From positions 248,001 to 312,000 of the forward strand of contig OW569363.1 of the NCBI GenBank assembly GCA_937625935.1: a stretch of 64,000 nucleotides of DNA, given 5' to 3'. Made by a program: the position numbers and the translations under genes. This document shows, one piece after another, positions 1-21,833 of this stretch. This DNA is from Tetramitus jugosus (lineage: Eukaryota > Protista > Heterolobosea). Numbering within the stretch: position 1 is the stretch's first letter; the number at the start of each line of letters is the position of its first letter. The notes beneath the pieces were generated by a model. It worked only from the letters and a program-made list of their open reading frames with translations. It was not told the DNA's origin and did not search any database.

Positions 1-1
1 A

Positions 2-3000
2 AGAAGATCGGGTCATCGTGACTCTCACAAGAGAAGAAGAAGTGAGAGCAGACATGAAGATAGTGATGATGACGACGACGATGATGTCTCATCCAAGAAG
101 AAGAGAAAAAAGCACAGATTAAAGCGTTTAAAAAAGAAGAACAAGTTGGAGAAGGAATTGGAAGATTTGCATAGAACTTCTGATGATGAACAAGCAGTTC
201 CATTGAGTGACGATGAAGTTCATGTGTCCAATGCCGATGAACTCAGAAACACATTGTTTTCGGCTGAGGATGAAGGGGAGATGGCCTATGATGAGGAAGA
301 TCATAACTCTCATCGATACGCAAAACAAAACAGAGGTTTCAGAGAGGATGACGAGGATGAAATGAGAGGATTCATTGTTGGTCGTTCCAAGCGCACAGAG
401 GAATATGATAATGGTGATCCATTTGGATATGGTCAAGATTATTATGAAGAGGAGGCTGCAACTACGGTCGACGCCAGAGAAACACTACAAAAGATATTTG
501 GTCCTGACGAGATTGCCGAACAATTCATGACCGAAGAAGATGAAATTATCAGAAACGAAGATATACCGGAACGTTATCAGTTGTCGAAGACTGTGAGAAC
601 TGTGACAGAGGTTGAGATTGCTGATGAAGCCAATTGGATTTATGCGCAGGTTTTTGAGTTTATGGAGTCTGGAGCACTTTTTGACAGTGGATTCACAAAC
701 GAGAACAACTACCAGAGTGGATGGGGTCAAGATATGTCGTCTTCCGAACAGGGCAATTGGGGTAGAGATGCTCCCACTGATACAGGCAATTGGGGCAGAG
801 ATGTTCCTTCTGATACAGGCAACTGGGGTCGAGATGCACCATCGGATCAAGGTAGCTGGGGTCAAGAGATGTCTTCCAATCAGGGAAGCTGGGGCCAAGA
901 ACTTCCACAGTACGATGGTATGGATGATGTTGATATGAATGGTAGCACGAGCAACTTGTTAAAGGAGAAGATTATTGCGGAAATAACTCAGGTTTTACAT
1001 TTCATTCTCATCAATCGATACGATATACCCTATATTGCACAATATAAAAAGGAGTATGTGGCCACGAACTTGAAATATGACGACTTGTGGACCATTTACG
1101 AGTATGATGAGAAGTGGTCAAGTTTGCAGTCAAAGAAGCAGTTGATACGTGATTTGTACAAAGAGTCACAAATGAGTGGCATCGATTTTTACCAAACTCT
1201 GGTCAATCAGTCCACCAATATCGAAGATGTAGAAGATTTAATTTCTCACTTCCAATTGAATGCTGGACCAAGCTCCAACACCAAAGACTCCACAGAAAGA
1301 AAAAAGAGAAGATCATCCAGAAGAGATCCATATACCGTCGCCAAACAAAGCAAGGCAAGTGGTATCACTCAACATTTTGGTCTTACTCCAATGCAATATT
1401 CTGAAAATATCAGCTTGAACTTCCAAATGCACAAGAAGAATGATCACCCTACAACAGCAGAAGTGTTAGCACAGGAGTACGTCTCCTCTCTTCATCCAAC
1501 TGGTGAAGCTGTGTTAAAGATTGCCAGGCATATTCTGGCGAGAGAGATAGCTGCTGAGCCTTATGTTCGATATGTTGTGAGACAAGCATACAAAATTTAC
1601 GCACAAATGTCTCTGACTCTAACACCAAAGGGAGAAGCCTCCTCTATTATCCGTCTTCGTGATTACAAGAATGTTCACAAGACGAGCTTCAGTAGTTATT
1701 CCAGATCATCTGATTTGATTCAATTGATGCATATATTCCGGGACGAGAGAGATGGACTCGTGCAAATCACCATCGACATACCTGACGAACGTTTGAATGA
1801 AGTTTTGAAACATGAGGATTTATATTTTTCAAGAGATGCTTCCTCGTCTCAATCATGGAACGATCAGCGCTTGCTCATTATTCAAGAAGTGAAGAAACTG
1901 TTGGCTCCTTCCATGGAAAACTTTTTGAGAAGTCATTATGCTAAGAAGGGAAAGACAGTTATCGGTCGAGCTTGCAAGCAATCATTAGAACAAATCCTGC
2001 ATCAAGGGCCATTCGGTAATGACAAGAATCATAATCCAAATTTACTTCAGGTCTATGAGCTAGAAGAGGAAGAAGAAAATCCAAGACCAACCAGACATCG
2101 TATAATGAGTTGCTGTGTTGGTATTGATCGAGAAATAACAACCTTTTCTGTACTGGATGTTGATGGACAGTTCAAGGCGACCTTGCAATGGAAATTCAAT
2201 GTGATGGGAAGAAATAGCAATGAAACTAAGGAAATTGCTGAAAAACAGGAAGACGAGCTTAGAGATTTTATTCGAGCACATGAACCTCATGCACTCGCTG
2301 TTGCAACTAGTGGATTGAATTCCATCAAGTTATTCAAAATAGTTCAAGATATTGTGAATGATCTCATTAGAACACGTAGAATCAAATGCAAGGGTGTGTT
2401 TTATGCTCCTGACAAGTTTGCCAGAATCTATGAAGTATCGCCAATTGCTCAACGCGAATTTCCAGGAGTTAGCGAAATTGAGAAACGTGCTGTATTTGTT
2501 GCTCGCTACTTTAACGATCCACTCACAGCTCTTGCTACTCTATTCAACTCAAACAACGACATTACCTGTTACAAGTACCATGAGCTTCAAGACATGTTGT
2601 CTACAGACTACTTGGTTTCTGTAATTGAACAAGCGTTTGTAACTATGGTTAATGCTGTTGGTGTGGACATTAACCGTATTGTCGAAGTCAAGAATCTTCA
2701 ATCTGTATTGCGCTTTGTCAGTGGTCTTGGTCCAAGAAAGGCTGACAAGATAATCAAGTCGCTACAGGCCAGAAAGAGTGCACTCCTAACTAAGCGTAAG
2801 CAACTTCTTGAAAGTGTAGAAAAGGGTGGTATAGATGTTGGAAAGGTCGTCTTCTTGAGTTGTGCCGCATTCATCAGAATCCTTCCACCACCAGGTGTTT
2901 CTAATGCAGAGTTCGATGTTCTTGACAACACAAGAATTCATCCAGAGAATTACAAAGTGGCTATCAAGATTGCCATGGATGCTCTCGATATGGAAGATGA

Positions 3001-4237
3001 CACCGATGAAAATAGCATTGAGCTTGTCATGAAGAATCCAAAGAGATTAGAGGATTTGGATCTTGTATCCTATGCTGAAGAGTTAGAGAAACGTGGTTAT
3101 GGTAAGCGACACAGTACGCTGCAAGACATTAAGACTGAGCTACAAGATCCCTTCAAGGATCCAAGAGATGACTTCATTGATTTATCGTCAGATGATCAAA
3201 GAGCAGTGGATTTGCTATTTACATATATAACCGGTGAAACAGACAAGACTCTGCATGTTGGCCAGCTAGTGTCCGCTATGGTACAAAGAGAGGCATTTGG
3301 AAAGAATGATCAATGGACTGGATTCAATTGTCAACTTGAAAACGGACTCAGAGCATTTTTGCATGTCGACACCATGGACACATCGAAGGAAATCAAGCCT
3401 GGATCAGTGATTGAATGTATAATAATTGATATTGACAAGAAAGGATTCTTTGTGAAGTTATCCTACAACGAATCTGAAATCCAACAAGCTAAGGAAGCTC
3501 TCGTGGTGAATCCAACGTTGAGCAAATCTAGCGGCCGATCAAGCAGTAGCTCATCTTCTCGTGCAACTCCAAAGATGAAAAGCAGACGTCAATTCAAGAG
3601 AAATATTCATCATCCTAACTTCAGAAACTATAATTATGGCCAAGCTATCGAGTTCCTCTCTGACAAACCAGCTGGCGAAACTCTCGTCAGACCAAGCAGC
3701 TTGGGACCTGATCACTTGGCAGTCACATTCAAGTATTTGAATGATCAGTTCATCAATTTGGATGTGAAAGAAGAAGACAAGGTGGATATCAACTCTTTGG
3801 GTCGCAGATTAAAGATCAAGGACAAGACATATGCCGATATCGACGAAATCTGTGTCAGCTACGTACAAAGCTTCATTGACTATGCAAAGATGTTGCAAAA
3901 TCATCACAAGTACACATCACTAGACTATGAATCGATTGAAAAGGAATTGGCACAAGAAAAACAAAAGAATCCGAAGTCCATTCCCTATAAGATAGCCGTA
4001 AATCCAAAGAGCCCTGGCAGATATATCATTTACTACATGCCAAACAAGCGAGTGAAGAAGCAACACATATCCGTTGGACCTGAGGGTTATTCGTTCAACC
4101 AACGTGCTTTCACTAATATTACAAAACTATTGAATGCCTTCAAGACTGCATTCTCTCAAAGCCAAGGTCTGAGACCAAGTTCTTCTTCATCCCACAGCCA
4201 CAGCAGTGGCACTTCCTCCGGCTGGGGAAATAAATGA
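2..4237 (+). CDS. SPT6: Transcription elongation factor / histone chaperone Spt6 (5' end lies outside the window)
   Basis: The frame is open from base 2, so the listed TTG start at 146 is not the true start. Acidic N-terminus, DIPERYQL motif, YqgF-like core, HhH (FVSGLGPRKA), LDNTRIHPENY, S1 domain and tandem SH2 region (HHPNFRNYNYGQA, RPSSLGPDHLAVT). Confidence 0.96.
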   Translation, partial: RRSGHRDSHKRRRSESRHEDSDDDDDDDVSSKKKRKKHRLKRLKKKNKLEKELEDLHRTSDDEQAVPLSDDEVHVSNADELRNTLFSAEDEGEMAYDEEDHNSHRYAKQNRGFREDDEDEMRGFIVGRSKRTEEYDNGDPFGYGQDYYEEEAATTVDARETLQKIFGPDEIAEQFMTEEDEIIRNEDIPERYQLSKTVRTVTEVEIADEANWIYAQVFEFMESGALFDSGFTNENNYQSGWGQDMSSSEQGNWGRDAPTDTGNWGRDVPSDTGNWGRDAPSDQGSWGQEMSSNQGSWGQELPQYDGMDDVDMNGSTSNLLKEKIIAEITQVLHFILINRYDIPYIAQYKKEYVATNLKYDDLWTIYEYDEKWSSLQSKKQLIRDLYKESQMSGIDFYQTLVNQSTNIEDVEDLISHFQLNAGPSSNTKDSTERKKRRSSRRDPYTVAKQSKASGITQHFGLTPMQYSENISLNFQMHKKNDHPTTAEVLAQEYVSSLHPTGEAVLKIARHILAREIAAEPYVRYVVRQAYKIYAQMSLTLTPKGEASSIIRLRDYKNVHKTSFSSYSRSSDLIQLMHIFRDERDGLVQITIDIPDERLNEVLKHEDLYFSRDASSSQSWNDQRLLIIQEVKKLLAPSMENFLRSHYAKKGKTVIGRACKQSLEQILHQGPFGNDKNHNPNLLQVYELEEEEENPRPTRHRIMSCCVGIDREITTFSVLDVDGQFKATLQWKFNVMGRNSNETKEIAEKQEDELRDFIRAHEPHALAVATSGLNSIKLFKIVQDIVNDLIRTRRIKCKGVFYAPDKFARIYEVSPIAQREFPGVSEIEKRAVFVARYFNDPLTALATLFNSNNDITCYKYHELQDMLSTDYLVSVIEQAFVTMVNAVGVDINRIVEVKNLQSVLRFVSGLGPRKADKIIKSLQARKSALLTKRKQLLESVEKGGIDVGKVVFLSCAAFIRILPPPGVSNAEFDVLDNTRIHPENYKVAIKIAMDALDMEDDTDENSIELVMKNPKRLEDLDLVSYAEELEKRGYGKRHSTLQDIKTELQDPFKDPRDDFIDLSSDDQRAVDLLFTYITGETDKTLHVGQLVSAMVQREAFGKNDQWTGFNCQLENGLRAFLHVDTMDTSKEIKPGSVIECIIIDIDKKGFFVKLSYNESEIQQAKEALVVNPTLSKSSGRSSSSSSSRATPKMKSRRQFKRNIHHPNFRNYNYGQAIEFLSDKPAGETLVRPSSLGPDHLAVTFKYLNDQFINLDVKEEDKVDINSLGRRLKIKDKTYADIDEICVSYVQSFIDYAKMLQNHHKYTSLDYESIEKELAQEKQKNPKSIPYKIAVNPKSPGRYIIYYMPNKRVKKQHISVGPEGYSFNQRAFTNITKLLNAFKTAFSQSQGLRPSSSSSHSHSSGTSSGWGNK
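716..903 (+). repeat. Coding tandem repeat of about 33 nt x 6, encoding G(N/S)WG(R/Q)(D/E) units inside Spt6
   Basis: TGG-GGN codon pairs start at 722, 758, 791, 824, 857 and 890 (spacings 36, 33, 33, 33, 33). Confidence 0.92.
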
Positions 4238-4385: not shown

Positions 4386-6339
4386 TTAGAAAAGACCAAC
4401 AACACGTCCAGTCTCAAAGTCTACATCAATATCGTAATAGGCAGGTTTTGTTGGCAACCCAGGGATAGTCTTAATGGATCCAACCAACGGAACAAGCAAA
4501 CCTGCACCTGCGTAACATCTCAATTCTCTGATTGGAAGAATAAAACCTGTTGGAGCTCCCTTCAAATTTGGATCATGACTCAAACTGTATTGAGTCTTGG
4601 CAACACAGATTGGCAGCTTGTCCAAATCCAACTTATTAAGTCTTTCTATAGTCTCTTCTACCTCCTTTGACAAAGAAACACCATCGGCTCCATAAATCTC
4701 CTTCGCAATAGTCTCCAATTTCTCCTTAATGCTTTGATTAAGGTCGTACAACACCTTAAAATTATTTGGTTGCTTGCATGCCTCAACGATGGAAGAAGCC
4801 ACATCGGTAGCTCCAGCGCCTCCTTGAGCCCAGTGGTTGCTTGGTACAGCATCAAATGCTCCAGCTTCCTTGGCAATTCTACGAACCAATTCAATTTCTT
4901 CATCACTATCACTAGTGAATCTATTGATACAGACTACACATGGCACTCCAAACTTTTGAATATTTTGAATGTGCTTGATAAGATTGGAACAACCCTTCTC
5001 CAAATACTCCAAGTTTGGAATCTTAGTTTCATTCAACTCACATCCACCATGATGCTTCAGTGCACGAATAGAGGCAACAAGAACCACACAGTTTGGAGTC
5101 AAACCACTTGCTCTGCACTTGATGTTAAAGAACTTCTCCATACCAATATCAGCACCAAAGCCAGCCTCAGTCAAAACATATCCATCCTTTGAAGCCAATT
5201 TGAGTGCAATCTTATCGGCAATAATACTCGAATTACCGTGAGCAATGTTTGCAAATGGACCAGCATGGATCAACACTGGTGTTCCTTCAATGGTTTGCAT
5301 CAGAGTTGGATGAATTGTGTCCTTCATCAAAACAGTCATTGCTCCTGACACACCCAAGTCCTCAGCTGTCACAGCATCACCACTCTTGCTATTGGCAAAA
5401 ACAATCTTTCCCATTCTTTCTCTCATATCCTTCAAGTCATGAGACAGAGCCAAGATAGCCATGGTCTCAGAGGCAACAGAGATGTCAAACGAAGTGTCTC
5501 TCGTGAATCCCTTTTCTTCTGGTCCCTTACCAATGGTGATATTTCTCAAATATCGATCACTAGTGTCCATCACTCTGTTCCATGTGATGGTGGATTCATC
5601 AATGTCCAATCTTGCCCACTTTTGCTTCTCTTCATCTGTAAATTCACTTGGCTTCTTGTTCACATCGATACCCAACTTTTCCAATCGAGAGAGCATAATC
5701 TTGCTAAACTTGTTACCAGGAGTCAACCGATTGAACAAGGCATGGGTTGGTTGAGTCTTCTCATGGAAGATACGAGTGTCAATAGCAGCGGCCAACAAAT
5801 TGTTAGCGGCTGAGATGGCATGAATATCACCAGTCAAATGAAGGTTGAAATCTTCCATCGGAATGATTTGAGCGTAGCCACCACCGGCTGCACCTCCCTT
5901 GATACCAAAAGTTGGACCCTGAGAAGGCTGTCTCAAGCATGAGAACACCTTCTTATTCAAATGAGCACCAAGAGCTTGAGAGATACCAATGGCCGTTGTT
6001 GATTTTCCCTCACCCAATGGAGTAGGAGTAATACCAGTGACGACAACATACTGTAGATGGAAAATGCGCGAAATGTAAACACAAAAAGCTTTCACGGTAC
6101 AAAATACAATACATCATAAACAACACACATACGTTGCCATCAGCTTCATTTTGTATTCTATTCAAAATGTTGATATCAATCTTTGCCTTGGTCTTTCCAT
6201 ATGGGATGATTTCATCCTCCAAGATGCCATAGCTCTTTGCTAATCCATTCACATTCATTGGTTCAACACTCTGTGAGATGACGATATCGCTTGGTGTTGG
6301 TGAAGCAATGTTTTTGATTGGGTTGCCAGTGTAACTCAT
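4386..6339 (-). CDS. FTHFS: Monofunctional formate--tetrahydrofolate ligase (FTHFS); exons 6339-6133 and 6050-4386
   Basis: Motifs [48 protein letters not shown] and [14 protein letters not shown]. Phase-0 intron 6051-6132 (GTATGT...CTACAG) joins ADGN to YVVVTG. First in-frame ATG is at 6339. Confidence 0.95.
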
Positions 6340-6635
6340 GTTGTAGTGCCGTTGTTGTTGTAGTGATGATGATGACAGGTAAGTCAAATGTTGTGAATGT
6401 GTGCCGTTGGTAAATCGTGAACGCAGTAACGCTGTTGCTTTTCTTCTTATTGAAAGGACCAAAATTTTTGCTGCCAGTTGCTTTGGTCTTGTTTAATAGA
6501 TGAGAGCTTTTGAACAAGTGTCTCTAATGCTTTTTCAGATGATGTCACCGCAAAAAAAGATCACCCACAAGCGATCTAAGCGGTTTTCGTGCTATTATTC
6601 CGTCCCCTCAACAACAAAAAGAATTGTGTGCGGAA

Positions 6636-11461: not shown

Positions 11462-14400
11462 TTACAATCCATAAGTGGATCGCATATGTTCAATCTTCTT
11501 CTCAATGTCAGCTTCAGTCCGATCCAGCGCCTCAGCTACACTCTGCATTGTTTTGATTGTGGAGTTTGTTGACGAGTTCTTGAGTAACATTTCACACAAG
11601 TCACCATCTACAACCGATTTAACAGGGAAGTAGCTGCTTCGATATGACAAGTGATCCCGGCCACAGATGAAATAATCAATTGGTTTCACTTCAGTTGACT
11701 GATTCTGCTCTGACTTGAATGACAATTCTCTTAATGTCATTTCCATACTTTGGAATAGGTCTGCATCTTGATGATGGGCAAATGGCATGATTATACCAAG
11801 CGAACCTGTTATTGTCACATAAATGATAACTGGAGGAGAACCCAAGGCAAATGACTCGAACTGCATTTTGGTGACAACTTCTCCGACATAAAAACCGGCT
11901 TGTGGTTGCAACTTGTTTGGTGCTCCGTTCAACAAGCCACGTTGCCAAACCCACTGGGAGGAGTTATCATATGTACTATCAACTTCGTCGTCACGAACAT
12001 TCGGAGGCAATCTGGAGATAAAAATGTTTCCAAACTTATCAGCACCTGCAATTGTATCATAATCGACCGGTTGAGCGCAAGTCAACCAATGTGGCGATGA
12101 ATCATCTGCAAATAATTTGAATGCACCTTCCGTTACATCATACTTCACAAAATGGAAACTGTGTGCCATATCTCCAACATAGATACGATTTCCATCCGAG
12201 TTGAGTGTAACAATTCTCTGTGGTACACAATCTCGCAATTCACACTTTCGCAAAAGCTGCTTCTGTCCTAGTTCATACAAACGAAGAGTGTTGCCAATAC
12301 CAGCCAGCAGTTGGCCTCTGAATGGAATAATAGTTTGAGGAATTCCCTTCACGGCAGTCGAATGAATAAAGTTGAGAGATACCTGACCGTTGTTGTTCAC
12401 GATCTGATAAACTCGGAGGAAGCCATTTTGTTCAGCTTGTACCCTTTCCTTAGGAGTAGGATACAGATTCATATTAACAGCAGTACCAACGACTAAATAA
12501 TTTGGAAGGGATTTGTCAGATCTACGAATATTAGCACCTGCCTTTTGGAAAGTTACCAAGGCCATGCTGAATGCTGCTTCGTTCGTTTGGAGGTCAGTCA
12601 ACGATACAGAATGAATACGCTCCAGAGTGGTAGGATCATAGATTGAAATACACGAGTTCCACAAACCAGATCTTGGAGCTGCACGTAATCTTCCGTACTC
12701 TGATTCATCGAGTTTCTCTGATGTTTCTCCTTCATCCTTCATTTCTGTATCATCTTGCGCGACTGTTTCATCAAAGCGATTGTGGTCAGTCTCGATGACA
12801 ACTAGCTTTCTTTCTTCTTGAAGAATTTCCAACTTTCGCGGAGTGAACTGGCATGGTATAGACATCTCAAAGAACATGTTGCCCAACTCAGCTCTATTCA
12901 CATTCAGAACTCTCAAACTGTACTTGTTAAGGTTATCAACTGCCAAAGCAACGATACCTCCCTCTTGCACTGCTTCGGAATACAAACCGCAAGCATGCAC
13001 CAATGGAGCGTAGGACAAAGGAACCCACACGCGTCTTTGATCACGATTCAACATAAGCCAGGATCTGCTAGAGAGTGCAAGAACAGCATCCTCATCAGCA
13101 GCAAGTTTGATACGAACCAACTGTACTGGCTTTGTGCCCAATAGCTTTGTACGAGTGTCAGAGAGATCACCAGTTGTCTGTTCGATACGTGTCCATGTAA
13201 CCATACCATTACTAAGACCCGTAACAAGTCGAATTTCACCATTAGCCTGTTCATCAATGACGACAGACTCAGGTTCAGACACACAAGCCAAACGACTCAC
13301 AACTGTTAAACAGTCATCTGGGTTGACAGATAGAATTCTGACATTCTTGTCTGCAACACAACCAAGAGCCAAGAATCTACCTCTCGATCTTCCCTCTGGT
13401 ACATTACCAAGTGCGACACAAGTTACTTCTGCTTGAACTTCAATCTTGTTAACTTCAATCATCTGACCAGTATTTGGCTGATACTCAAAGTAGATAACCT
13501 GTCCATCACTCGTAACAATGCACACTTGCATTGAGTTTGCGGAAGCATAGCGAATAACTCTATTAGGCTTCGATGAAATGGCAGTATTAAGCTCCCAATT
13601 CGATGTACGACCATCAAGATGGAACAGATACACTCCGTTAGGATGCACCTGCAAAAATGCATCTCTATTATTACCCATACCACCTCTCGCCAAAATCGAT
13701 GCAGTGTTTACCATGAACCCACTATCATGAACCTCATCTACACTTTCTCCAATAGAGAGAACCATTGTGAATTGTGCAAACGAAATTAGGATGTACTTAT
13801 CGAACAAGAAGCCACTTTCTTCATTTCTTGCCTCAATAGTAAAAACGCGAGTACTGAGATGACTCAGAGGAGAAATAGCCAATTCATGAACTGGTGTACC
13901 GTGTCTCAAAATACGGATTGAGGATCTTTCAGCACGACCGCAGAGTGCATATATTTGTGGTTGGTTTTCACCAAGCAAGTCAGTCATTTTAAAATCGATA
14001 AATGGTGCACATGAAGACAACTCTTGAACCTTCAACAAATTCTTCAGTGGTCTCGGATTGAACAAAGGTATTGTGTTCATGACTTGCTTATCGTCACAGA
14101 GCTGCATTTCTGCTACAATAACATCCTCATTCTCATCTCCTACACCCTTGAATCGATAGAAGCTGTGATTTCCAAACTCTGATGCTGAGAATAAATAACC
14201 ACTCCGCAACACATTAATGCTGTTCGCAACAGGTGTTGTATCAAAATATTGAACGTTAATGGCTGATACAATCTTTGTGTTTTCATCAAAATTCAAGGTA
14301 ACCTTGTACAGGTCACCAACTTCGCTTTGAATAATGAAAAATAGTAGAGTACGCTTATTCTTCTTCTTGCTCTTGTGCATGCCGGATGCTACGATCATTA

Positions 14401-15244
14401 GTCCTCTTGCAACTGGCATCTGCACTCTTCTAGGTATAGCCGATCTCGTTGGTTCCTTGTTCGCATCACCAAACAATATACTATAATATGTCAAATAATT
14501 TTCAGAGGCAACAAGAATACCACTTGGGCCATCAGATCCACCAGGCACTGAAATCAAATAATGAGCCGATCGATCCACAACAATACTGTGCTTCTTCACC
14601 ACATGATTCAATCCCAGATCCAACTCATAAAATGTTAAATTTTTCGTCACACCTGCTGCATTGTTCACAGTGTCATAGTCCACTTCGAGACATGCAAACA
14701 TTGGATTCTCGAATCCGACATCAACACCCACTGTTGCATACACAAGTGTGTGTGATTTGTGAGCTTCCAGTGGTGATGAGATAGTCAACTGATTCTGTGC
14801 GTCCCTGTTCAACACATAGACAAACTTTTGTTTCTCAACGGCAGAGATCATGACAGCTCTTCCCTTTGGGTCCACTGCCAAATACTGACCAGGAACAATT
14901 CTTCGACAACCAGTCTTTCCAAACGTTTCCTGATGTACCTTGACAAAACAATTCTCCTTCTCATCAAACTCTAAAATACAAATTCGACCACTGTCACTGC
15001 CCACGACAATGTAGTCTCTGTTGGGACCAGGCATTCGAAACACCTCGAGTGAACGAACTGTAGAGTATGTTGGTTGAGAATGAACCTTCTCCATTAAGCT
15101 ACCAGTGACTCTGTACAGTGACAAATGAGTCGATTGAGCCACAACAATCTCATTGACTCTTTGTGAGGCAAGTGATGTGAAATTACCACTGACAGAGTGT
15201 GTGATACAACCACTGTTTTGCAGAGTAAGATTGTACAGGTGCAT
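11462..15244 (-). CDS. SF3B3: Splicing factor 3B subunit 3 (SF3b130/Rse1)
   Basis: Starts MHLYNLTLQ (ATG at 15244). Motifs VHQETFGKTGCRRIVPGQYLAVDPKGRA, ISSPLEAHKS and GRDHLSYRSSYFPVKSVVDGDLCE. Confidence 0.97.
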   Translation of the reverse strand: MHLYNLTLQNSGCITHSVSGNFTSLASQRVNEIVVAQSTHLSLYRVTGSLMEKVHSQPTYSTVRSLEVFRMPGPNRDYIVVGSDSGRICILEFDEKENCFVKVHQETFGKTGCRRIVPGQYLAVDPKGRAVMISAVEKQKFVYVLNRDAQNQLTISSPLEAHKSHTLVYATVGVDVGFENPMFACLEVDYDTVNNAAGVTKNLTFYELDLGLNHVVKKHSIVVDRSAHYLISVPGGSDGPSGILVASENYLTYYSILFGDANKEPTRSAIPRRVQMPVARGLMIVASGMHKSKKKNKRTLLFFIIQSEVGDLYKVTLNFDENTKIVSAINVQYFDTTPVANSINVLRSGYLFSASEFGNHSFYRFKGVGDENEDVIVAEMQLCDDKQVMNTIPLFNPRPLKNLLKVQELSSCAPFIDFKMTDLLGENQPQIYALCGRAERSSIRILRHGTPVHELAISPLSHLSTRVFTIEARNEESGFLFDKYILISFAQFTMVLSIGESVDEVHDSGFMVNTASILARGGMGNNRDAFLQVHPNGVYLFHLDGRTSNWELNTAISSKPNRVIRYASANSMQVCIVTSDGQVIYFEYQPNTGQMIEVNKIEVQAEVTCVALGNVPEGRSRGRFLALGCVADKNVRILSVNPDDCLTVVSRLACVSEPESVVIDEQANGEIRLVTGLSNGMVTWTRIEQTTGDLSDTRTKLLGTKPVQLVRIKLAADEDAVLALSSRSWLMLNRDQRRVWVPLSYAPLVHACGLYSEAVQEGGIVALAVDNLNKYSLRVLNVNRAELGNMFFEMSIPCQFTPRKLEILQEERKLVVIETDHNRFDETVAQDDTEMKDEGETSEKLDESEYGRLRAAPRSGLWNSCISIYDPTTLERIHSVSLTDLQTNEAAFSMALVTFQKAGANIRRSDKSLPNYLVVGTAVNMNLYPTPKERVQAEQNGFLRVYQIVNNNGQVSLNFIHSTAVKGIPQTIIPFRGQLLAGIGNTLRLYELGQKQLLRKCELRDCVPQRIVTLNSDGNRIYVGDMAHSFHFVKYDVTEGAFKLFADDSSPHWLTCAQPVDYDTIAGADKFGNIFISRLPPNVRDDEVDSTYDNSSQWVWQRGLLNGAPNKLQPQAGFYVGEVVTKMQFESFALGSPPVIIYVTITGSLGIIMPFAHHQDADLFQSMEMTLRELSFKSEQNQSTEVKPIDYFICGRDHLSYRSSYFPVKSVVDGDLCEMLLKNSSTNSTIKTMQSVAEALDRTEADIEKKIEHMRSTYGL

Positions 15245-15630
15245 GGTGTGATTGCGCAATAATTCGTGTTGAATAGGTTTTCACTGCAAACTGACGCTCT
15301 TTGATGATCACAACAAAAATTTTCGGCGAACAAGAAAAAAAAAACAACGACAAGAGTTTTTGTAATTTAGCATAGTTCAGCAAAATGGTTGAACATGGAA
15401 GAGGGTGGTGCTTACTTCGTAAAGATGGTTGAGATCTAAAGTTTTGTCATTGTAGTGTTCTTCTACTACAGTTCTTAGTAAGAACAGTTGCAACTGTTGT
15501 AGCTACGAGGGCTTCACCACCAACACACCCAAAATAGTTTGTTCAACAATTTGGTCCTACACCAAAACAAAAACTGCAACAACAACAGAAACCACTCAGA
15601 TCTTAAAAAGCCACCTGAACAACAAACATC

Positions 15631-18758: not shown

Positions 18759-21700
18759 TCAATTTTCAGTTCCGAGATTTTTTTCGTAGTTGCATAATGC
18801 ATCAGCAATGGATAGCTTGTTGAACTCAACTGCCCAAGCGATGAGATCTCTTACGAAAAGTCTTTCGCTTTGAACATTGTAAAACTTTAAGGACTGTATC
18901 TTGTTGAGAACAAGTGACACATTATCTGGCGCATTGATTGTCATGCTATCGACAGCGGCAAGGGAGCTACTCTTGAGTCTCCTGGATTTTAAGTTCCACT
19001 GTTGATTGAGTATTGACACATTGCGCTCCTTGAAAATAGAAAGGATCTCATTCCTAATTAGCATTTGTCTTTCGTCCATTGCTGCCACTAGTGTCGTTAA
19101 TGCTACAGTCCTTTCAAACACCTTGTTCAGAATCTTATCAGGTAAGGACTTCATGACAAGTGTCACTTCTGGATCATTGTTATTGACCATGGTGATAACC
19201 AATTCTTGTTGACGAGCCTTGTCGTACCGCTCAGTGCGTGCAATCTTTCTCCGCTTCTCTCCATCGGCTCCAATTGAAATTGTGGAATATCCATCTGAAG
19301 CAGAAGGTGAAGCTGCATTCGTGATACCATCCATGGCAGCTGTGTCCAGAGGTATGCCTAATGGACTCTGAACTTCACTGCTTGCTAAATTATTTACAGC
19401 GGCATTTTCATTTGATTTGAGGTCTTGTGCCTCCTGCTCCTCTTTCATCTCCATAATTTCCATTTCATCTCCCAACAAAGCAGCATTTCCATCCTCTTGT
19501 CCATGTTGCTGCTTGCTGATGCTGCCTCTCCGACTCGAAGGAGATCTGCTTCGTCGCTTCCGTTTCTCAAATGGACTTCCAAAGTTAACTTGGTTTGGAT
19601 TCTTGGATTCAGCGAGTGGATCTCTCAATATTTGTCTCCTTCGGATTACCTCATCAAAGTTACCCATGAGATGAATTGGAACACTGTGTTTTTGAATCTC
19701 TTGCTTTGAATATTGATTCATCATTGCAATGTCAGACACCTGCCTAAGTTTTGATGATTTTTCATTGAGCTTAGACAGTATACTCTTATTGTGGTACAGA
19801 TGGGAGCTCATTTGTCTCAACTGCTGTAACAAGCTCGACCGACTGACATCGAATGGATTCTTGTGTACCATCATTTGACTCGTGAACACTGCAGTGTTGG
19901 TACCTGTGGAGAATGGAGATGAAGTTTTAGTTGTGTCTGTACTGCCTACGTTCTGTTCATCACCATCCTCCGGGCTGGAAGCAGGGGATGATGTGGAATC
20001 ATCATTGGAATTTGTTGAAGCATTCGGCTCTGCATGAAATGAAGAGCGATGAAGCAATGATCGAAAATCATTATCGGACTCCTTGGATTCTACGCTCTTT
20101 GCCAAGTTGGACACTCTGACAGAGCTGATTGTGGATGCTTGGACATTGTTTTGCTGTTGCATAATACTAGCAAGCTTCTCATTTTCCATTTTCTCTTCCT
20201 TCTTCATCTTTTTCAAGAATGCAGTGAGCGAGTATGGCAGAGATCCATCAATGTGATCTGGGAAGAATACGACAGACATGTTGTTGTATCTCTTGAGTGC
20301 GATCTTCAGTGGATTGATATAGTAGGGAGGCAATCTCTGAACATATTTCTCAAAGTTCTGCTTCCATTGATTGGTTGGTTTCATCTTGTGATTATGTATC
20401 AGTTCGTCCATCAAGTAGAAGAACCGAGGGAAATTATAGGGCAGTACATAGAGGAACACGCGATAGTTTTGAGGATCAGCAGGGTTCTGATTCGATGGAT
20501 TCGGTGGCATAAACACTTTGCGAACGAATGCAAAAGGCTCTCCATATGGACCACAACTCGTCCTCACTCCGCTATTGAGAACATATGCCTTGTAACAGCC
20601 TTGTTGCTGAGACGAAGTATTGTTAATGACATACCGTGCCAAACTAGATTGTACATCGATTTCATACGTGTCTACACATGGAAACTTGTTCCTCTGTAAT
20701 GTTTGCAAGAAATCAGTTTCATGATACATGAGAAATATCGTTGGGTGGGCAGCTCGAGGTGGCATACTTGTCATTGAGATTTCTGGATAGTAGGACTCTG
20801 GAATGGGCCACAATCCAACGGCTTGTTGTTGCTGAGGAGCCAATGGCACGTACAGGATCGTTCTCTGAGATGATAAAATTAAATTGTCAGGCGTATTGTT
20901 GGTTGCCAACCGTTTCACCAACTCAAAGTTCACCACAACACACATTTGACCAGATGCAGTGGCCAGCTCTTCCATATAGTGCATAGTTTGTCCCATTTGA
21001 TTCAATGTTCTGCATTGACCACCTGTTGTCTCACAGATGGGCGCAACCAACGAGCTGTGCATATCAATTGGCTTTTCCTCACTTGTTGCGGCCTGATCAT
21101 CCGATGGCAATAAACTGCTGGTGCTGCTATCACTCACACCTTTTATCGCGCTACTTCTACTACCACCACTACTCGTGCTATTACTTGTCGAAGCAACAGC
21201 AATAGAGACTGCACTAGAAAACTGTGAGATCAGTGAGTTTGTGCTGCTCGGTGAAATCGACGGTAATTTCAACAAGCAACAAAACACGCGTTGCTCCCAT
21301 CGAAAAGGTTCCATGGTCAACTGTGAAGAGTATGATCGACTCGAACTAGGCAAAACCAAACTCTCTGACACACCACTCGTCGATGTCAATCCAGATCCAT
21401 CCGTAAACACAATGACACTCGCAGGTTCACAACGATGAGGATAACGACCCTGTCCATACGAATCCGTATTGTACTGAACTCGATATTGATTCAACAAGTC
21501 AAACGCTGTTCTTAATCCGAGTCCCAATATCGTGAGATCACTTGATCCCAAATTGCGCAACGCATTCAAAAAAGCAAATGAATTGGTGGAGTCACTCCAA
21601 CCAATTTTGATGGCTTGTGAGAGAGTGTTGGCACAGGTGACGAGCATGAATCGATCTTGTTGTTGTTGTTGTTGTTGAGCGGAGTGTGATGCTGCATGTG

Positions 21701-21833
21701 TTTGCTTGCTTCTCATTTTAATAAAGTGTTCAATGGCACTCTTGGCAACATCGAGTAAGCTCATGCCATTGACAGTTTTTTGATTCATGGAGGATGATGT
21801 GTCCACGACGAACACAACAGTGGCACTCACCAT
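18759..21833 (-). CDS. INTS6: Integrator complex subunit 6 homologue (N-terminal VWA domain)
   Basis: Motifs FVVDTSSSMNQKT, LDVAKSAIEHFIKMR, DSYGQGRYP, EPFRWEQRVF, WPIPESY and HSVPIHLMGNF. Confidence 0.92.
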   Translation of the reverse strand: MVSATVVFVVDTSSSMNQKTVNGMSLLDVAKSAIEHFIKMRSKQTHAASHSAQQQQQQQDRFMLVTCANTLSQAIKIGWSDSTNSFAFLNALRNLGSSDLTILGLGLRTAFDLLNQYRVQYNTDSYGQGRYPHRCEPASVIVFTDGSGLTSTSGVSESLVLPSSSRSYSSQLTMEPFRWEQRVFCCLLKLPSISPSSTNSLISQFSSAVSIAVASTSNSTSSGGSRSSAIKGVSDSSTSSLLPSDDQAATSEEKPIDMHSSLVAPICETTGGQCRTLNQMGQTMHYMEELATASGQMCVVVNFELVKRLATNNTPDNLILSSQRTILYVPLAPQQQQAVGLWPIPESYYPEISMTSMPPRAAHPTIFLMYHETDFLQTLQRNKFPCVDTYEIDVQSSLARYVINNTSSQQQGCYKAYVLNSGVRTSCGPYGEPFAFVRKVFMPPNPSNQNPADPQNYRVFLYVLPYNFPRFFYLMDELIHNHKMKPTNQWKQNFEKYVQRLPPYYINPLKIALKRYNNMSVVFFPDHIDGSLPYSLTAFLKKMKKEEKMENEKLASIMQQQNNVQASTISSVRVSNLAKSVESKESDNDFRSLLHRSSFHAEPNASTNSNDDSTSSPASSPEDGDEQNVGSTDTTKTSSPFSTGTNTAVFTSQMMVHKNPFDVSRSSLLQQLRQMSSHLYHNKSILSKLNEKSSKLRQVSDIAMMNQYSKQEIQKHSVPIHLMGNFDEVIRRRQILRDPLAESKNPNQVNFGSPFEKRKRRSRSPSSRRGSISKQQHGQEDGNAALLGDEMEIMEMKEEQEAQDLKSNENAAVNNLASSEVQSPLGIPLDTAAMDGITNAASPSASDGYSTISIGADGEKRRKIARTERYDKARQQELVITMVNNNDPEVTLVMKSLPDKILNKVFERTVALTTLVAAMDERQMLIRNEILSIFKERNVSILNQQWNLKSRRLKSSSLAAVDSMTINAPDNVSLVLNKIQSLKFYNVQSERLFVRDLIAWAVEFNKLSIADALCNYEKNLGTEN

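Follow-up and report, generated by a model that had tools for sequence, protein, structure and literature searches.

Outside plants and fission yeast, the way in which Argonaute and PIWI proteins are first brought to RNA still being transcribed from active genes is an open question, and a gene at the start of the 64,000-nucleotide stretch of Tetramitus jugosus DNA analysed here (the window; G000:C20:248001-312000 of the 56-contig, 26,350,207-base assembly in which our genome searches were made) suggests that the elongation factor Spt6 may serve as one such route. Spt6 travels with elongating Pol II, its tandem SH2 domain (tSH2) binding the phosphorylated Rpb1 linker and its core sitting on the polymerase. 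In T. jugosus its coding sequence, delimited from the open reading frame, Pfam matches and RNA contigs, is intronless, encodes 1467 amino acids and occupies positions 1..4237 of the plus strand, the ATG lying 166 nt upstream of the window start (G000:C20:247834). Pfam matches to HTH_44, Tex_central, YqgF, HHH_7, HHH_9, S1 and SH2_2 were obtained, and the protein has the HtH, YqgF, HhH, S1 and tandem SH2 domains (the last at 3560..4147, plus strand, by Pfam) and the acidic N-terminus of the Spt6 family, as well as a sequence match in the PDB. The whole-genome search returned this one Spt6 gene, which rules out a specialised paralogue of the SPT5L kind.

The initial annotation had read six WG dipeptides in units of about 11 residues after the sequence EANWIYAQVF, together with a GWG at the C-terminus, and translation of the plus strand bears this out. 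The six 11-residue units (710..910, plus strand) are recognised by TRF, which detects a 33-nt period, by translation and by a WG/GW domain score of 42; they follow the consensus (D/E)-(Q/T)-G-(N/S)-W-G-(Q/R)-(D/E)-x-(P/S)-(S/T), and their Trp codons start at window positions 722, 758, 791, 824, 857 and 890, spaced by 12, 11, 11, 11 and 11 codons. The terminal GWG (4220..4228, plus strand, from translation) stands in a Ser-rich tail immediately before the stop, and the same position reads SWG in two other strains. Removal of the segment by splicing, which the initial annotation had considered fatal to its reading, was not seen: contigs from four RNA runs, one of them oligo-dT, cross the repeat without gap or joint, and the oligo-dT contig is identical to window positions 12-3946. 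These contigs are collinear with the genome and retain the segment, which rules out an intron or splicing artefact; they leave room for rare spliced forms or DNA carry-over, and their gene-length extent fits a transcript. An assembly artefact is likewise ruled out by the identical six units in independent JGI and Logan assemblies.

The repeat lies within a surface loop of 103 residues (656..964, plus strand, from alignment and model) between two helices of the HtH region. The loop is opened by the helix carrying the conserved EANWIYAQVF (626..655, plus strand; from alignments, with a model pLDDT above 90) and closed by a Q-(Y/F)-D-G-x-D motif that alignment shows to be common to relatives with and without the WG repeat (908..925, plus strand); the Pfam match to HTH_44, the Spt6 helix-turn-helix, follows directly (944..1171, plus strand). 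That the segment is an insertion relative to Spt6 orthologues, as had been proposed, is evident from the alignment, in which the median length of the anchored loop is 15 residues across the 167 Spt6 proteins having both anchors vs. 103 in T. jugosus. The same loop has ~27 residues in human Spt6, of which ~12 are kept in a cryo-EM-derived chain, so that it is partly unmodelled there. A WG-rich loop at this position was found in none of the 167 proteins outside the Tetramitus-related clade. A search of the ESM Atlas with the loop sequence gave no match. The AlphaFold2 model built from a 68-sequence alignment (mean pLDDT 85) matches the fold of solved SPT6 chains; in it the loop is the sole long stretch with pLDDT below 50, and both flanking helices exceed 90. 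The short loop elsewhere and the low pLDDT between solid helices indicate that the repeat was inserted into a disordered surface loop able to accept extra sequence, and that, as modelled, it leaves the Spt6 core intact.

Among 33,500 sampled residues of other T. jugosus ORFs, the WG frequency is 0.00024 per residue and no ORF exceeds one WG/GW per 60 residues, which puts the six-WG array well above what chance would give. A genome-wide DNA pattern search for three WG close together, which misses some contexts, returned Spt6 and one out-of-frame match, and a looser WG pattern was dominated by telomeric repeats, with 30 further, mostly telomeric matches beyond those listed; by these searches, the six-WG array is likely unique within the T. 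jugosus genome. The contig ends themselves (e.g. C7:13-160 and C14:556193-556449) carry TTTGGG-like telomeric repeats with degenerate G-rich stretches.

Selection on the array had been suggested on the ground that its units have diverged at the DNA level with every WG kept, and the comparison between units agrees. Pairwise identity is 16-26 of 33 nt, whereas TGG-GGN is invariant; WG codons give a pN of 0.00 and a pS of 0.53, vs. a pN of 0.44 for spacer codons, and pS outside WG is 0.78, close to saturation. Strains differ at three places within the repeat, each time synonymously. Since WG was the ground on which the array was chosen, the constancy of WG there is partly circular, and the cross-species evidence therefore weighs more than the within-array pN.

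Six close relatives were found, and P0001 is a 99% identical copy. In P0002 (66% identical) this loop contains G-x-W-G four times, separated by G/S/N-rich spacers whose lengths differ from those in T. jugosus, and the longer pattern G-x-W-G-(Q/S)-(E/M) is kept all four times despite the unrelated spacers. Six loop Trp in SWG, GWS, GWY and GWN contexts occur in P0005 (47% identical) and a single loop SWG in P0003 (50%), and the 49-residue loop of P0004 (48%) has Tyr and Phe and no Trp. Five loop Trp, spaced 13-17, are present in a broken Spt6 copy of another lineage (P0223/P0030); this copy contains stops, shares its frameshift between two independent metagenome assemblies (L060 and L081) and is possibly a pseudogene duplicate. 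The loop of Naegleria species, at 24-26 residues, has no Trp. The initial annotation had held that loss of the Trp residues in close relatives would speak against it, and this did not refute it: relatives at 47-66% identity keep four to six loop Trp, though P0003 keeps one and P0004 none. Taken together, these sequence comparisons indicate that the Trp residues of the repeat are under selection.

In a FastTree phylogeny, the five proteins P0001-P0005 form a well-supported clade, sister to Naegleria Spt6, in which P0004 falls beside P0005 and P0003 beside P0001/P0002; the tree is well supported within Heterolobosea only, the order of gains and losses across supergroups being beyond its resolution. 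The loop Trp may thus have arisen either once, followed by reduction along two branches, or twice. Orthology of the relatives' Spt6 is supported by conserved micro-synteny: MRG-like (L015:2650-3630), RSE1-like (RSE1/DDB1/CPSF1 family; window 11462-15259, minus strand) and FTHFS (window 4386-6400, minus strand) genes neighbour Spt6 in T. jugosus and in the relatives L016 and L019. Further along the window (18759-21833, minus strand) is an INTS6-like gene, with a VWA domain and an INTS6 beta-barrel, which points to Integrator components in a heterolobosean.

The resemblance to an Argonaute hook was scored with the plant matrix and algorithm of PMC2910046 (WG/GW dos score, threshold 6.99). The T. 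jugosus repeat reaches 42 half-bits, P0002 59 and P0005 68.5; scores of 25-150 are the medium class, and composition scores alone give false positives (PMC2910046). The Trp spacing of 11-12 residues fits that in human AGO-binding sites, where Trp pairs lie at least 10 residues apart (PMC9262622). The segment has at least three WG/GW in a G/S/N/D-rich context with few large hydrophobics and scores above the threshold; the loop is disordered and exposed (pLDDT below 50); the Trp are kept while the spacers diverge, although one relative has none and another a single one; and Argonautes exist in the same organism (two intact PIWI-clade genes, with DEDH). The repeat thus fits an AGO hook on every sequence criterion applied and is a candidate hook. 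Its units (W-G-Q/R-D/E) presumably fall outside the AP-1 ear-binding and LIR-type consensus patterns.

The genome search for small-RNA machinery, on which the proposed link depends, found AGO/PIWI, Dicer and RdRP genes all present, the Argonautes being PIWI-clade only. There are two of them, with structure matches of E ~1e-160 and 1e-159 to PIWI vs. 1e-64 to AGO, and both have an RG-rich N-tail and an intact DEDH tetrad (slicer-type); an AGO-clade Argonaute was not found in the genome. A full Dicer (helicase, dimerisation domain, PAZ, two RNase III domains and dsRBD) is encoded in two open frames, a second Dicer is short (PAZ-RNase III), and there are three RdRPs, of which L011 (G000:C5:12033-16499) is fused to an N-terminal helicase domain. 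Three further RNase III proteins of 920-980 residues (L065, L066 and L067), without PAZ or helicase, have a Drosha-like layout.

On the polymerase side, the genome has three Rpb1-family genes only, the Rpb1 CTD consisting of ordinary heptads with no hook, and a single Spt5 (L075:471-3920) with one WG only and no WG repeat. Tandem TPG-containing repeats of about nine residues occupy the C-terminal region of this Spt5. A Pol V-like polymerase and a hooked Spt5 were searched for in the genome and not found; nor did the RdDM-type features appear, there being no Pol IV/V-like extra polymerases and no match to C5 DNA methyltransferase (PF00145) in the whole genome, DNMT2-like candidates included, a negative search that falls short of proving absence. 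With PIWI-clade Argonautes only and no C5 DNA methyltransferase found, the system is not plant-type RdDM. With no hook on Spt5 or Rpb1 and no AGO-clade protein, any elongation-factor hook would be that of Spt6, its partner would be a PIWI protein and its outcome would be other than plant-type DNA methylation. Naegleria has PIWI but no loop Trp, and the loop is therefore not needed for PIWI pathways in general.

The Spt6 hook has been called a streptophyte synapomorphy, other organisms being said to be hook-less (bioRxiv 10.1101/2024.01.20.576478; 10.64898/2026.03.25.714125). WG/GW-rich tails after the SH2 region were nevertheless found in Pelomyxa (scores 104 and 57), Echinamoeba (78), Protostelium (36) and other protists (up to 102), and such tails are also present in Arcella, Thecamoeba, the malawimonad Gefionella, the cryptophyte Hanusia and diatoms (the proteins concerned are P0075, P0101/P0229, P0066, P0040, P0074, P0048, P0194, P0210-P0212, P0035 and P0178). 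Trp makes up 2.1% of Spt6 C-tails vs. 0.26% of the acidic N-tails in 135 proteins; in 104 non-plant tails it adjoins Gly 79 times vs. 40 in shuffles, and 29 of the 104, T. jugosus with its GWG among them, have Trp in the last five residues vs. 7.6 expected, these 104 sequences being phylogenetically non-independent and biased to query matches. The terminal Trp, often in the form GW, SW, QWD or QWE, is possibly an undescribed terminal motif of Spt6. Both Naegleria and T. jugosus Spt6 end in a single GW-like motif.

In the FastTree phylogeny, the tailed protist Spt6 show no supported grouping with plant SPT6L, so contamination is unlikely. As judged from these sequences, tails across protists are at odds with the published plant-only Spt6 hook, and the internal repeat of T. 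jugosus is best understood as a Trp platform, recurrent or ancient on Spt6, that here occupies a different position; the tree is compatible with ancestral presence and with repeated gain alike. The initial annotation had proposed a link independently acquired at a position unlike that in plants. The position, an internal loop, stands; the independent acquisition does not stand in the same way, as an old hook may have been relocated given the protist tails. In a literature search of incomplete coverage, neither a WG repeat inside Spt6 nor a hook on a non-plant Spt6 was found to have been described.

We give an even chance to the reading that the repeat is an AGO-hook-like dock which brings PIWI-small RNA complexes to elongating Pol II. 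It would form a multivalent Trp docking platform, carried by the Spt6 core on a flexible loop, with G/S/D/N/Q/T spacers that would keep the Trp side chains, 11-12 residues apart, soluble. These Trp might insert into a hydrophobic surface of either PIWI-clade Argonaute; the docked PIWI would carry small RNAs made by Dicer/RdRP and, held near the nascent transcript, could cause matching RNAs to be sliced, terminated or marked for chromatin silencing, the DEDH tetrad being intact and a C5 DNA methyltransferase not having been found. The old C-terminal Trp motif of Spt6, now a single terminal GW in T. jugosus and Naegleria, would have been supplemented in the Tetramitus-related clade by loop Trp motifs amplified through 33-nt tandem duplication. 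Selection on the Trp, the WG/GW scores, the Trp spacing, the disorder of the loop between well-predicted helices, the complete RNAi set in the genome and the lack of a hook on Spt5 or Rpb1 speak for such a dock, as do, by analogy, the precedents of plant SPT6L-AGO4 and the Tetrahymena Twi1p partners. Against it, both Argonautes are PIWI-clade, a clade across which, according to a structural survey, the Trp pockets known from AGO vary greatly, with additional sites allowed for (PMC12477606); composition scores yield false positives (PMC2910046); and there is no correlation with the pathway, Naegleria having PIWI without loop Trp, P0004 having no loop Trp and P0003 one.

The alternative that survives best, which we nonetheless consider unlikely, is that the Trp motifs dock another Trp-pocket partner from the machinery of transcription or RNA processing, such as CCR4-NOT, PAN3 or a partner of the terminal Spt6 Trp, with no Argonaute involved. 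CCR4-NOT subunits and PAN3 bind the Trp motifs of GW182. All the evidence of selection on Trp applies equally to a partner of this kind, and the terminal Trp enriched on Spt6 tails looks like a general short motif. The AGO pockets are not conserved in PIWIs (PMC12477606), and partners other than AGO, CCR4-NOT among them, are considered in the SPT6L paper itself (bioRxiv 10.1101/2024.01.20.576478). However, it is AGO-hooks in particular that the repeat resembles in its G/S/N/D context and its several copies, and the plant Spt6 WG domain, the only one tested so far, binds AGO4 (bioRxiv 10.64898/2026.03.25.714125).

A neutral tandem expansion in an insertion-tolerant loop, with WG persisting through its presence in the duplicated unit, would suit a loop whose length runs from 2 to ~110 residues across the Spt6 set and which carries other long inserts poor in Trp, a T. 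jugosus genome rich in simple repeats and the existence of relatives without the motif. However, WG is unchanged between units whose synonymous sites are near saturation, Trp has a single codon and accounts for 0.3% of disordered regions in T. jugosus, and species that are 47-66% identical show the motif again, set among unrelated spacers; this cross-species conservation largely refutes neutral expansion, which we regard as quite improbable. Least probable, and in our judgement very unlikely, is a sticker-and-spacer low-complexity region whose aromatics drive Spt6 into transcription/RNA condensates with no specific pocket, as the evenly spaced Trp in a polar disordered loop, the Tyr and Phe retained in Trp-less P0004 and the freely varying spacers and copy number would allow, but Trp is never swapped for Tyr/Phe in the four motif-carrying lineages and different species have kept the flanking G-x-W-G-Q-E, suggesting a specific site.

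Should the repeat be a PIWI dock, this selected WG array on the sole Spt6 of a discoban amoeba, taken with the WG-rich Spt6 tails in several other supergroups, would make Spt6 a protein that tethers small RNAs to Pol II elongation, whether recurrently or from ancestral times. T. jugosus is well suited to examining this, with two PIWI-clade Argonautes, no DNA methyltransferase found and a 60-residue peptide with six Trp, and binding, if true, would define a structurally new Trp-binding surface on PIWI proteins. More tentatively, and with more doubt than confidence, we put forward that a Spt6 Trp hook tethering Argonaute/PIWI to elongating Pol II may be an ancient and widespread eukaryotic device and not an innovation of streptophytes, situated in the C-tail in plants, amoebozoans, a malawimonad, cryptophytes and diatoms, reduced to a terminal GW in Naegleria, lost in most of the fungi and animals sampled, and shifted, in the Tetramitus clade, to the HtH loop, where it would work with PIWI and without DNA methylation.

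Among known systems, the closest by host protein is plant SPT6L/GTB1 (Arabidopsis AT1G65440), whose WG/GW tail binds AGO4 in the Pol II complex, and AGO4/AGO9 independently of Pol V (bioRxiv 10.64898/2026.03.25.714125). The two share a disordered WG/GW segment in a G/S/N/D context and an expected action at Pol II. They differ in that the plant hook lies in the C-terminal tail past the tandem SH2, whereas that of T. jugosus lies in the HtH loop with one GWG at the C-terminus; in scale, plant SPT6L homologues having 9-12 copies over ~200 residues (score 165-212) vs. six over 60 residues (score 42); and in the T. jugosus setting of a PIWI-clade candidate partner, no Pol IV/V and no C5 DNA methyltransferase found. 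T. jugosus Spt6 does not belong to the plant SPT6L clade but groups with Naegleria, away from Zea and Andrographis (FastTree). NRPE1, SPT5L/KTF1, S. pombe Tas3 and GW182/TNRC6 resemble the repeat in their multivalent Trp in disordered polar sequence with a spacing of at least 10 residues; unlike it, they bind AGO-clade proteins, and the T. jugosus Rpb1 and Spt5 are without hooks. In ciliates, Spt6 supports the small-RNA pathway through lncRNA transcription, no Spt6 hook being found in PMC10830130, and the Tetrahymena GW proteins Wag1p and CnjBp bind PIWI-clade Twi1p (PMC2910046, PMC5666084). Although Wag1p and CnjBp are separate proteins and not an elongation factor, they parallel T. jugosus in pairing GW/WG repeats with a PIWI-clade Argonaute, in a pathway that acts on nascent transcripts (PMC5666084).
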